A stretch of 64,000 bases of DNA. Source: Intoshia linei. Taxonomy: Eukaryota; Animalia; Orthonectida. The notes under the pieces were generated by a model. It was not told the DNA's origin and did not search any database. It worked only from the letters and a program-made list of their open reading frames with translations. Below, piece after piece: positions 25,069-29,437 of the stretch. The DNA is taken from assembly GCA_001642005.1 (NCBI GenBank), contig LWCA01000030.1, forward strand, positions 8,607-72,606, read 5' to 3'. How positions within the stretch are numbered: the stretch's first letter is position 1; the number at the start of each line of letters is the position of its first letter. The position numbers and the translations under genes are program-made.

Positions 25069-25350
25069 TCTTATTTAAAAAAGAAAAAATTGATAAATAT
25101 CAATTAATAATTTGTAGTTTATCTCATTAAAATTTTAAATTTCAGTTTCTAGTTAAATTAAATGTATTTGTGTAACGGTTAATTCGTTTTCGCATTTTAA
25201 AAATCACTTGAATTCTATCATCAAATAACATATTTCAAGATTTTCACTATACATTAAGAAAATAGTTGGAATATTTATTACTGATATAACAATATATTAA
25301 TGATTAATTAATATTAAAATTAACTAATCCAACAGATTTAATATGATTAA

Positions 25351-28300
25351 TTATTTTGAATTTTTCTTTTTAAAATTAAGTCCAATATCAATTTGCGATG
25401 AAAGCGTTGCAACTATTTCATCAAACTTTGTTTGTTCAAAATTATTCATTTTACCTATGGGGTAAATATGTTCGACTCCATTTACCTAAAAAATATATAA
25501 TTGTAATCTTTTATTCTATAGATTACTCCCAATTTAATTTTGGAAGAAAAAAATGGCAATTTAGTAACATTGGAGGCAACATAAGCATAATCGTAAACTT
25601 CTTCGCCTTTTAATCCTTTCATCAACAATTCGACAAATATGTACGCTGCATAAGCTGTAGATAACGTAGCAGTACCCTATATATATAATACATTGTATTA
25701 ATTTGGTTAAACCTTTCCTTTTTTTATATCTAATACAACAGTACCAGCATTTTGTATTTTGTCAGTCAAATCAATTTGTTCTTGCTAAAAGTACATTTTA
25801 AATTTTATAAAATTCACATAACACACATTCATTTTATTTAAAGGTGACGATTATGGATGGATACTGCTCATCCATCAGTAACAGCATTTGACAACCTTTT
25901 CTTTCATAATAGGCACCGGTTAAATGCCTAAGCGTACATGTATATTAAAGTTTGATAAAGTGTTTTTTTTTGTTTTCTTGGTGGGCGAATTTTTAATTTG
26001 CAATGATTTTAAAAAAATATTTAGTAAAATTACATTTGTAACATTATATAAAAATACTTAGGGGACATTGGGAAATAAGAAGCAACGGTTCGAAAACGAT
26101 GATGTATATTGATTATATCAGGCGTTCTCAACGGGATCCAAATGGTCCATTGAGTCATATGTCGTGAATTATACGGTACGTATTGGTACGTGAACCTTCT
26201 ATCGTGAAATAACAATAACCAAAATAAAACTAATCTAATTGGAATTGATACCAATTCTTTTTATAAACGAATGCATTGATTGAAAGATTGATTGCAATCA
26301 ATTATTTCCAATGTCTGACATGGCTCATCTAACTATTTTATTATATTCCTCCATCTCTATATATCTTTAACATACATTCCGTTTCAAAAATAACGCAACA
26401 TTATTAAAAGCTCTGTAGTAATTTTTACAATTATTTTTGTGCTCACAGATTAAATTTGACATTAGTACAAATCATATTACATTATATTTAATTTAAATAA
26501 TCACAAAATATTATAATAAAAAATGTTATAGCAAAAAAACTAAATTTTAAATAATAAATGTTGTTTCAAAAATAACGCAACTTTTCAATTATCATCCACT
26601 GTTACACTTTATTTCATATTAATTGTAATTATTTTTTTTATTTAATGATCACATGATATTTTGGTAGATAACAATTATACAATATTTAATTTTTAGCTTT
26701 ATGACAGATAGAAAACCTCATTTATCTGAAGAGGACATTCAAAGGGTATTTATGATGCGATTAAACAATAAAACATTGTCTGAAATAACGTCAACCTTTA
26801 ATGTTAATAAATCGACCATTCATAGAATCTTGAAAAAATAGAATAAGCCCGACAAAAGAGGTAAGCCAACTAAAATAACACCTACCCTTGAACGATCGAT
26901 AATAAGAAATGCATCTAATTCTACTCAATCTCTAAGGAATATTGCTGAAATCACTGGAAATTGTGAGCCTTTAAAAATAAACAAATACGAATTGCATTAT
27001 TTTTGAAATGGAGTGTAATAACTACACATTTTTCTGTAGCCCCATTGAGAACAAATGCGTTAATATATCATCTACAAAAGTGCACACACGTACATATTTG
27101 ATATTTAATTAATTTGCTAGGAAAACTACCCTAATTAAAATTTTTATAATGGGTCCTACTGCGGACTAAATTCACATACTGGCTGTTATAGCAGATTCAC
27201 CATTATTAAACATTTTGATTTAATGAAAATTACACTGGTAAAATCTAAATGAGGCATTTGAGATAATAAAGGTAATATTGTAGTAGCAGAATGACCGCCA
27301 ACAACTGGGCATTCGCATTTGTTTACTTGCTGCTTCTAAAATTTGATAAAAATTAATTAATTATTAATTAACAAATAATATTAATTATAATTGTATAATA
27401 TACAATGTATATATTGAATAATTATTCATATATTATATATGAATATATAGAAATTATAAATTACTTTTGCTTTGCCAATAAAAACTCGACTTCTGATGAC
27501 GTCTAATGTTGTCATGCCAAAAATCCTTTTTGGGTCGTATACATTAAATTTTTTAAAAACATTTGATGCTACAGGCACCATTGAATTTACTGGATTTGAA
27601 ATTATGCAAAACATTGCTCCTGGACAGAATTTAGCTATTGCTTCGCTCAAATCACTCACTATTCCAGCGTTAACATCAAATAAATCTTCTCTTGACATGC
27701 CTACATTTATCCACATTAATTTAATTCATTCGTTTTTTACACCATACGTATATTTATATATCAGGGATGCACAACATAATACATAGGACCCGTGGGTACC
27801 ATGCGGCCTACCTTTACTCAATCTGCAACCTGTGAAACTTTTTATTATTATTGTCACAATATGCAAATGAAAATATAAATAGAATTTTTCCATTTTTCTA
27901 AACTAGTGCCAAATTTTAAATTAGAATCCATACATATTGAATCTTTGTATATGCTCTAAAACATTGGTTCTTAAACTTTTTCCACTTGGCAACCCTTAAT
28001 TCAATAAAATTCGATTTGGCACCCCAAAAATTTAATAAACTTAAATTAGATAAAATAAAAACAACGTAACTACGGTAACAAAACATGATTAGATGAAATG
28101 GTTTTAAATTTAAATTACAGAAAACCTTTCAACATAAAAAACACTGGTTTGTCCGATTTATCAATATCATATATTTTAGTGAATCCATAACAAATATAAT
28201 CATCACTCTATTTTCTTTTTTTGAAACACAGTAACGACACATTAAGCGGATCACTTTACTATAGAAAAAAGCAGACAATGGACCAGTTGTGAAAAACGGA

Positions 28301-29098
28301 CCACTTTTTTCAAAATTTACAGGTTTTCATTACTCTTACGTTTTACGTTATACAAAAAATAAACATTTGATAATAAAATTTAATAAAAAGCGGACCATGT
28401 TTTGAAAAATCGATATATTGATTTTAGACTTATCGTCGAATGAATTTGATATTACAAATAAACACAAACAAAAATTGCGTAGCATATTATATAAGTATGA
28501 TCATATAGTATTAGTATCGTGTCCGTTCACAATATCGTAAATTCAAATGATCGTATTTATTTTGGTTAAGTTTAAATTAAATAATTCATTAACTAGTTCA
28601 TTTAATTTAGACTACAAGCCCAAGTTAAAACTGAAATATTAAGATACCATATTATACTTACAAACCATATTACAAAAAAAAATATATTTAATTAATTTAT
28701 CCAATTCAATTTACTATATTTAGTTTAATTATGAAGTTTATTTTCTTACGATCTTTTGATAGTGCGCCTATTAGTATACAGTGTGTATTACACAAATAAA
28801 TTAACATGTCTAACTATATTCTGATCAAAATATAATATTGATTACCTGGCTTCTGTGCAATACCAGAAGTCATGACAACAATTTGGCAATTTTTAAGAAC
28901 ACTTTCAAGAGATTTTGCAGTTTCGTGACCTTGAATAACGGAATCTGTGTTTATGTGACTAAGATCACATGAGACTCCATGGACGTTGGCAATATCATAA
29001 AGTGCTAATTCTGAAACATCTTTGTTCAACCGCAATAACAAACTTAACGGTTGACCAATACCACCACTTGCTCCAAGAACTGCTACTTTAATCTTCAT
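25351..29098 (-). CDS. MDH2-family malate dehydrogenase homolog with Arg->Gln at the specificity site and no transit peptide
   Basis: Six exons (29098-28846, 27700-27465, 27335-27234, ~25784-25713, 25676-~25527, 25485-25351). Motifs [51 protein letters not shown]. No internal stops. Confidence 0.93.
26375..27015 (+). mobile_element. Internally deleted Tc1/Tc3-like transposon in MDH intron 3
   Basis: TA|cattccgtttcaaaaataacgcaa ... ttgcattatttttgaaatggagtg|TA, with an inner direct copy of the TIR core near 26563. A truncated paired-like HTH ORF starts at 26701 ([29 protein letters not shown]...[10 protein letters not shown]...[11 protein letters not shown]). Confidence 0.85.
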
Positions 29099-29437
29099 AA
29101 TTTCAAATAGTTTAGTAAATAGTTATAGTATTATTTCGATTCTTTAAATATACTAATATTTTGTGCTAAATTATCAAATAATTATTTGCTTTAATAACCT
29201 ACATTTCATTCAATACCATAAAGATGTATTGATCTTATTTTAAATTCATTATGTCAATCTGAGCATTATTTTATTATAAATTTAGATTATAGCATGGTTA
29301 ATTTGTTAGCAGTTTGTAAGCTTACTCTAAATTTGGTAGAAAAATTAATAAAATATAATACATATCTGCATTAGTTTCACACTTTTTATGAAACTGGATG
29401 TTTTAATGCACTCACTCTTCGGTTTCATGCATTAGAA

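Follow-up and report, generated by a model that had tools for sequence, protein, structure and literature searches.

An MDH2 duplicate with glutamine at the specificity position in the orthonectid Intoshia linei, a candidate lactate dehydrogenase of malate dehydrogenase descent

The enzyme pair formed by malate dehydrogenase (MDH) and lactate dehydrogenase (LDH) is a textbook system for studying the evolution of enzyme specificity. In the MDH of Escherichia coli, Arg81 (position 102 in LDH numbering) binds the C4 carboxylate of the substrate; the R81Q mutant prefers pyruvate, at an activity far below that of the wild type, and the replacement of Ala80 by Pro is a helpful second change (PMC11461317). 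In an ancestral MDH, the Arg102Gln replacement was found to increase the activity on pyruvate 2800-fold and to decrease that on oxaloacetate 2500-fold, and no variation at Arg102 is said to exist among known MDHs (PMC4109310). Boucher et al. counted four or more origins of LDH (PMC4109310), to which a later review adds that of Selenomonas (PMC10583557). The known convergent origins concern protists and one bacterium, and all of them started from MDH clades other than the mitochondrial-type one: the trichomonad LDHs, derived from a cytosolic-type MDH, carry Leu102, while the apicomplexan LDHs (Lys102 and a loop insertion) and that of Cryptosporidium (Gly102) are derived from an LDH-like MDH (PMC4109310). 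In the metchnikovellid microsporidia, according to the account of Mikhailov et al. (2017) given in PMC6190962, the mMDH carries Tyr or Trp in place of Arg102 and was proposed to be an LDH on the basis of its sequence alone.

The gene described here lies in an AT-rich window (the whole stretch of 64,000 nucleotides analyzed; about 25% GC) belonging to contig C2262 of the 41.6 Mb, 3520-contig assembly of Intoshia linei. It encodes an MDH2-type protein with Gln at position 102 (hereafter the Gln copy), and an Arg-bearing MDH2 (the Arg copy) is present elsewhere in the same genome. The Gln copy shares the fold and the family of MDH2 (TIGR01772, MDH_euk_gproteo; 371.9 bits as compared with a cut-off of 273.05). 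Its identity amounts to 50–55% with MDH2 from animals, plants, and algae and to 55% with that of Intoshia, and it has in common with these enzymes the His-Asp pair, Arg109, Arg171, Asn140, and the NAD-selecting Asp; it differs from them in carrying Gln102, in having no presequence, and in showing 22 private changes with respect to 12 holozoan MDH2. With canonical L-LDH (TIGR01771) it shares the superfamily, the mechanism, and Gln102, but it is not a member of that family by score (76.6 bits, the cut-off being 303.55) or by descent, as it branches within MDH2. Canonical L-LDH has Thr at position 246, where the Gln copy has Ala, and is tetrameric, whereas the scaffold of the Gln copy is presumably of the dimeric MDH2 type, as expected from its family. 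The loop of bacterial LDHs, GANQKPGETR, is similar to that of the Gln copy, GIAQKPGMSR.

The sequence and genomic marks of an MDH-derived LDH, namely an MDH-clade duplicate, a residue other than Arg at position 102, and a genome without any canonical LDH (in the case of the present assembly), were found here. The pattern is the same as in the trichomonad, apicomplexan, and Cryptosporidium LDHs, where an MDH was duplicated in a parasite having no canonical LDH, position 102 changed, and the new copy evolved faster. The Gln copy differs from these enzymes in its parent clade (mitochondrial-type), its animal host, the presence of Gln, and the lack of an insertion; in addition, their functions were demonstrated biochemically, whereas that of the Gln copy is a predicted one. 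The metchnikovellid case, which is the nearest precedent, also involves, as it is presented in PMC6190962, a mitochondrial-type MDH changed at position 102 in a reduced parasite. There, however, the only MDH copy was altered and the TCA cycle is gone, whereas in Intoshia, which is a metazoan, a duplicate was altered, MDH2 was kept, and position 102 was taken by Gln and not by an aromatic residue. No report on the Intoshia gene or on any orthonectid LDH was found in the literature searched, which did not include the original genome paper. This agrees with the initial annotation, where an LDH-type change of this kind was said not to be known from an animal MDH2; an idea of the same sort has, however, been published on the mitochondrial-type MDH of the metchnikovellids (PMC6190962).

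Structure and transcription of the gene

The MDH2-type gene is located on the minus strand (29098..25351) and consists of six exons, which together form a 948-nt open reading frame encoding 315 amino acids. Its introns are GT-AG in 5/5 cases, GTAAT being the commonest donor. The gene model is 100% identical to the public Intoshia linei protein record P0326 / A3Q56_00541, on which the Pfam domains PF00056 (Ldh_1_N) and PF02866 (Ldh_1_C) were recognized. This record and that of the sister gene were retrieved with an alignment of the long exons and one full-length homologue, and the whole-protein searches described below were based on P0326. The features of the gene are as follows, where the joints are those present in the spliced contigs described below:

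29099..29200, minus strand: 5' UTR, following the genome colinearly and containing an in-frame stop 8 codons before the ATG; no presequence exon
28846..29098, minus strand: exon 1, ATG at 29098-29096, residues 1-84 and the first base of Gly85, donor G/gtaatc; encodes the Rossmann N-terminus with GASGGIGQ, Asp35, and the specificity loop through AQKP, and matches Ldh_1_N
28853..28855, minus strand: codon 82, CAG (Gln), at the position of Arg102 (LDH numbering) or Arg81 (E. coli MDH)
27465..27700, minus strand: exon 2, residues 85-163, with MSREDLF (Arg88), Asn120, and LDVIRS (Asp151, Arg154); joints 27335/27465 and 27700/28846
27234..27335, minus strand: exon 3, residues 164-197, with VVGGHSA, the catalytic His178, and Gly180Ala; joint 25784/27234
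25713..25784, minus strand: exon 4, residues 198-221, with Arg206Lys, Glu213Val, Val215Leu, and Ala217Ile at otherwise invariant columns; joint 25676/25713
25527..25676, minus strand: exon 5, residues 222-271, with GTATLST (Ser223Thr, Ala224 unchanged, Met228Thr)
25351..25485, minus strand: exon 6, residues 272-315 and the stop codon TAA at 25353-25351; joint 25485/25527

Six sequencing runs from two studies contain this stretch, and four of them were compared with the window over positions 25300-29200: one DNA run dating from 2016 and three runs dating from 2024. In the 2016 run, the gene is covered colinearly at a depth of about 10 and no splice joints occur. In the three 2024 runs, the five introns are left out precisely as modelled in contigs with a word depth of about 800–1800 (contig depth does not measure expression well), and the introns themselves have a depth of only about 2–20; the joint 27700/28846 was seen in contigs of X2, X4, and X5. 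The 2024 runs carry no RNA label, and since they contain spliced contigs which are absent from the DNA run, they were taken to be cDNA. The X4 contig covering 28845-29059 shows 0 differences from the window, including at the CAG codon, and since this contig belongs to a spliced run, the codon stands in the transcripts. No alternative letter at 28853-28855 was found among the differences listed in any of the four runs. The two points on which the initial annotation depended at this level have therefore held: the X4 contig agrees with the CAG codon, no Arg codon being present among the differences listed, and the gene is expressed, with all five introns spliced as modelled in the three 2024 runs. 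A sequencing error at codon 82 was ruled out in view of the agreement between the RNA-like contig and the assembly, and a pseudogene was ruled out in view of the open frame and the correct splicing.

At position 25627, all four runs (DNA as well as RNA-like) have G where the assembly has A, which changes codon 238 from TTG (Leu) to TCG (Ser). Other MDH2 have a conserved Ser at this position. Leu is given in the public protein record, and the A in the assembly probably stems from an assembly mistake or represents a rare allele.

The protein encoded by the Gln copy starts two residues ahead of the first Rossmann strand. No mitochondrial presequence was identified in this copy, the 5' region of which is unspliced and contains the stop codon listed above, in frame and 8 codons ahead of the ATG; a contig of X2 (record 14) spans 28845-29200 without any joint and continues past 29200. 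Since the presequence exon is missing, the protein should remain in the cytosol, a location predicted here from the gene structure, and a duplication omitting the presequence exon would explain the absence of the signal. The C-terminus of the protein (...KKKNSK) shows no SKL-type peroxisomal signal.

The specificity loop, the sister gene, and their divergence

The minus strand from 28870 to 28846 reads ACT TCT GGT ATT GCA CAG AAG CCA G/gtaatc and exon 2 starts with GC ATG TCA AGA GAA GAT TTA TTT, which gives the loop SGIAQKPG/MSREDLF, where intron 1 splits the Gly85 codon. The Gln codon reported at 28855-28853 in an MDH2-type loop was thus read directly in the sequence, and its alignment on the MDH Arg is clear: Gln82 is located opposite the Arg of the solved MDHs shown in the alignments (yeast Mdh3, human MDH2, and watermelon glyoxysomal MDH), opposite E. 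coli Arg81, and opposite Arg in 12/12 holozoan MDH2. Arg was found at position 102 in 205 of the 208 full-length homologues retrieved, the sole true exception being the Intoshia Gln copy. Among the divergent 50%-identity representatives, other residues occur at this position: Gln in P0025 and P0085, Met in P0131, Pro in P0149, Gly in P0073, and Ile in P0134. Since these MDH2-type proteins, which come from eukaryotic contigs and metagenomes, branch apart from the two Intoshia genes in the trees, Arg102 has, as far as these sequences indicate, been lost repeatedly within the mitochondrial-type MDH clade.

The other residues of the active site are conserved. Arg88, Asn120, Asp151, Arg154, and His178 of the Gln copy correspond to E. 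coli 87, 119, 150, 153, and 177, and the NAD-selecting Asp35 is also present; expressed in LDH numbering, the catalytic set comprising the His195-Asp168 pair, Arg171, Arg109, and Asn140 is complete. Given the open spliced frame and this alignment with E. coli MDH, the gene can be said to be intact with its remaining catalytic residues in place, as first described. No new basic residue has been gained in the loop. The column of Ala224 (in GTATLST), which we take to be LDH position 246, where canonical LDH has Thr, still has the MDH-like Ala, again in keeping with the first description. Judging from its 50% identity to solved MDHs, the fold of the Gln copy is fixed.

The canonical MDH2 of the genome, for which the initial annotation had suggested searching, was found on contig C877 (P0308 / A3Q56_02081). 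It has Arg102 in the loop GIPRKPGMSRDDLF, with the motif GIPRKPG, and a separate first exon encoding a basic presequence of 27 amino acids, MFCRVGKLITNSININSSRFLRIHNYK; the Gln copy is 54% identical to it. Among 5.8 billion clusters, P0308 was the best match of P0326 (55%, 353 bits), all the other matches being at 53% or less, and no orthologue closer than P0308 was found. A profile search with exon 1 among 1.84 billion representatives yielded nothing above 58% identity over the whole exon, the self-match being also missing.

In a maximum likelihood tree (LG+C20 PMSF, 38 rows, with E. coli MDH as the outgroup), the two Intoshia copies are sisters (100/99) within the bilaterian MDH2, with branch lengths of 1.11 in the Gln copy and 0.40 in the Arg copy, both rows being long enough for long-branch attraction to be a concern. 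The two copies have four changes in common at columns which are invariant in the 12 other holozoan MDH2. They also share four intron positions, each of them having one private position in addition, and the Arg copy carries a further intron after the presequence exon. The fact that four intron positions are shared argues for an old duplication at the DNA level and not for a retrocopy, and the data as a whole point to an old, lineage-specific duplication of MDH2. The proposal that the gene is an MDH2 paralogue is accordingly supported: it branches inside MDH2, and its sister (100/99) is the Arg-bearing MDH2 of the same genome. Two other origins were considered and ruled out, namely a retrocopy, in view of the four intron positions in common with the sister gene, and a contaminant or horizontal transfer, the gene being sister to the host's own MDH2 and showing the same AT-rich composition and GTAAT donors.

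The Gln copy has changed much more than its sister at sites which are otherwise fixed: at 117 invariant columns, the private changes number 22 on its side and 4 on that of its sister (binomial p = 0.0005). Those in the loop are Pro77Thr, Ala78Ser, Pro81Ala, and Arg82Gln; Gly180Ala adjoins the catalytic His; and the AGTEVV..GSATLSM segment shows Glu213Val, Val215Leu, Ala217Ile, Ser223Thr, and Met228Thr. The enrichment of private changes in the loop, the neighbourhood of His177, and this segment was not significant (odds ratio 2.1, p = 0.13), and the faster rate could therefore reflect a relaxed constraint. As regards the changes suggested to be possible co-adaptations, GSATLSM has indeed become GTATLST and GTEVV has become GTVVL, at columns invariant in 12/12 holozoan MDH2 and in E. 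coli, but the private changes are not significantly clustered around the active site.

Candidate function of the Gln copy

Only three genes were detected in the assembly with Ldh_1_N: the Gln copy, MDH2, and MDH1. The latter is of the cytosolic type and has the Arg (SRREGMERSELL). It appears to be split between C3444:19592-19906 and C1585:815-1385, and its first ~58 residues were not located, which is due either to a gap in the assembly or to an exon that escaped detection. The questions of whether the genome has a canonical LDH and opine dehydrogenases, which the initial annotation had raised, both received a negative answer in this assembly: in its 41.6 Mb (3520 contigs), the L-LDH model matches just the two MDH2 copies, far under the cut-off, and the search with the opine dehydrogenase family Octopine_DH gave no match. 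The absence of LDH from an assembly in 3520 contigs does not amount to proof of absence and holds for that assembly alone. The only gene of the D-2-hydroxyacid dehydrogenase family (2-Hacid_dh_C) in the assembly, C2606:8619-8969, reads as the co-repressor CtBP, and this family therefore seems to include no enzymes of the PHGDH, GRHPR, or D-LDH types in the genome. PEPCK is present in the assembly.

The long retention of the Gln copy, its intact state, and its good transcription make it probable that selection maintains it for a task other than the efficient reduction of oxaloacetate. The most likely reading, to which we give about even chances, is that it is a cytosolic, neofunctionalized MDH2 duplicate reducing pyruvate or another monocarboxylic 2-oxoacid. 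In this copy, Arg102, the partner of the oxaloacetate C4 carboxylate, has been swapped for Gln, the canonical LDH residue, and the hydride-transfer machinery has been retained, with the His178-Asp151 pair, Arg154 binding the C1 carboxylate, Arg88 in the loop, Asn120, and Asp35 for NAD. The preference for oxaloacetate would be lost, and a monocarboxylic 2-oxoacid would be reduced at the expense of NADH, pyruvate being the most likely one and L-lactate its product; the role of the absent LDH and opine dehydrogenases would thereby be filled and glycolytic NADH reoxidized. Other spiralians have a canonical LDH (PMC10583557), and since no LDH or opine dehydrogenase was found in the Intoshia assembly, the reduction of pyruvate in the cytosol would be the simplest role. 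That pyruvate is specifically the main substrate can be put forward only tentatively. It is likewise possible, although we would not bet on it, that I. linei has lost the animal LDH and rebuilt an L-LDH from an MDH2 duplicate which dropped the presequence exon and changed Arg102 to Gln, as in canonical LDHs. The LDH-type function is inferred from the effects of Arg102Gln in other MDH scaffolds (PMC11461317, PMC4109310), and some of the features observed go against it. The R81Q mutant of E. coli MDH, which belongs to the same clade as MDH2, is much less active than the wild type (PMC11461317). The change from Pro to Ala in the Gln copy (Pro81Ala) is the opposite of the Ala80 to Pro change which was helpful in E. 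coli, and the retention of Ala at position 246 would not be expected in an LDH. In addition, a PEPCK-malate route could reoxidize NADH without any LDH, both MDH1 and PEPCK being present.

It is unlikely, although the possibility deserves some weight, that the duplicate is simply evolving under a relaxed constraint, as a weak or inactive enzyme which perhaps has a non-catalytic role or is being lost. The 22 private changes at invariant sites, as compared with 4 in the sister, and the longer branch are what would be expected in this case; the changes are scattered over the protein with no concentration at the active site, and the single R102Q mutants in the mitochondrial-type MDH class are poor enzymes (PMC11461317). 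The 948-nt frame has nevertheless remained open in a genome with 25% GC, the five introns are correctly spliced at a high contig depth in three runs, no catalytic residue has been lost, and the private changes include many conservative replacements, such as K/R, V/I, and S/T. The duplication is also old enough for introns to have been gained or lost, and still no disabling change has occurred.

Two further readings retain a functional enzyme and differ from pyruvate reduction in the substrate. We hold it to be rather improbable that the substrate of the Gln copy is not pyruvate but another 2-oxoacid, for instance hydroxypyruvate, glyoxylate, 2-oxobutyrate, or an aromatic or sulphur-containing one. 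It would then resemble the trypanosome aromatic 2-hydroxyacid dehydrogenase, which is derived from a cytosolic MDH. Gln102, the retained catalytic residues, and the expression of a fast-evolving duplicate fit this substrate range too, as do the Ala at position 246, which is not LDH-like, and the changes Glu213Val, Ala217Ile, Ser223Thr, and Met228Thr in a segment packing on the loop and the nicotinamide pocket; the sequence gives no pointer to any particular larger substrate, however, and with both LDH and opine dehydrogenases missing, pyruvate is the simplest need. It is quite improbable that the Gln copy is still an MDH, a second cytosolic one in which Gln102 is tolerated or compensated for and which works in a PEPCK-malate route, for example. 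Its profile scores are those of an MDH (371.9 bits on MDH_euk_gproteo, with a cut-off of 273, vs. 76.6 on L-LDH), apart from Gln102, its residues of substrate binding and catalysis, Ala246 among them, resemble those of an MDH, and the genome has PEPCK; but the loss of Arg102 costs at least 10^3-fold of the oxaloacetate activity wherever it has been tested (PMC4109310, PMC11461317), the loop contains no new basic residue, and an Arg-bearing cytosolic MDH1 already exists in the genome.

If the Gln copy does reduce pyruvate as an LDH, LDH would have arisen independently once more, for the first time in an animal and for the first time within the mitochondrial-type clade alongside a sister that has remained an MDH. 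The case would constitute a natural experiment on the extra substitutions enabling Arg102Gln to work in a setting in which this mutation alone yields a poor enzyme, the sister pair making it possible to study the path from MDH to LDH in a scaffold of this kind, and it would show how the end of glycolysis was rewired in a drastically reduced parasite. Should the protein prove to be a weak MDH, or to have no activity, it would be an ordinary diverging duplicate. The discovery of a canonical LDH in a better Intoshia assembly or transcriptome would weaken only the replacement argument.

Other features of the introns

In intron 1, the 2024 RNA-like contigs reach a depth of about 150–800 at approximately 28050-28320, which is well over that of the rest of the intron. 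The joints in this intron comprise a plus-strand 33-nt GT..AG one (28145/28179) and a minor one (27699/28118). No Rfam family was matched when the gene region was scanned for an intronic RNA accounting for the expressed stretch, which could correspond to a transcript of its own, to an alternative exon, or to a repeat that is expressed. In the same intron, the contigs of the DNA run have a summed depth of about 8800 at 28444-28705, as compared with 10 in the flanks, and many loose ends: this stretch is a high-copy dispersed repeat. Intron 3 contains a short plus-strand open reading frame (26701-26841) resembling the helix-turn-helix N-terminus of a Tc1/mariner-type transposase, and in the DNA run the region 26350-27000 has an increased depth and numerous variant letters, which matches what would be expected in the case of a repeat family.
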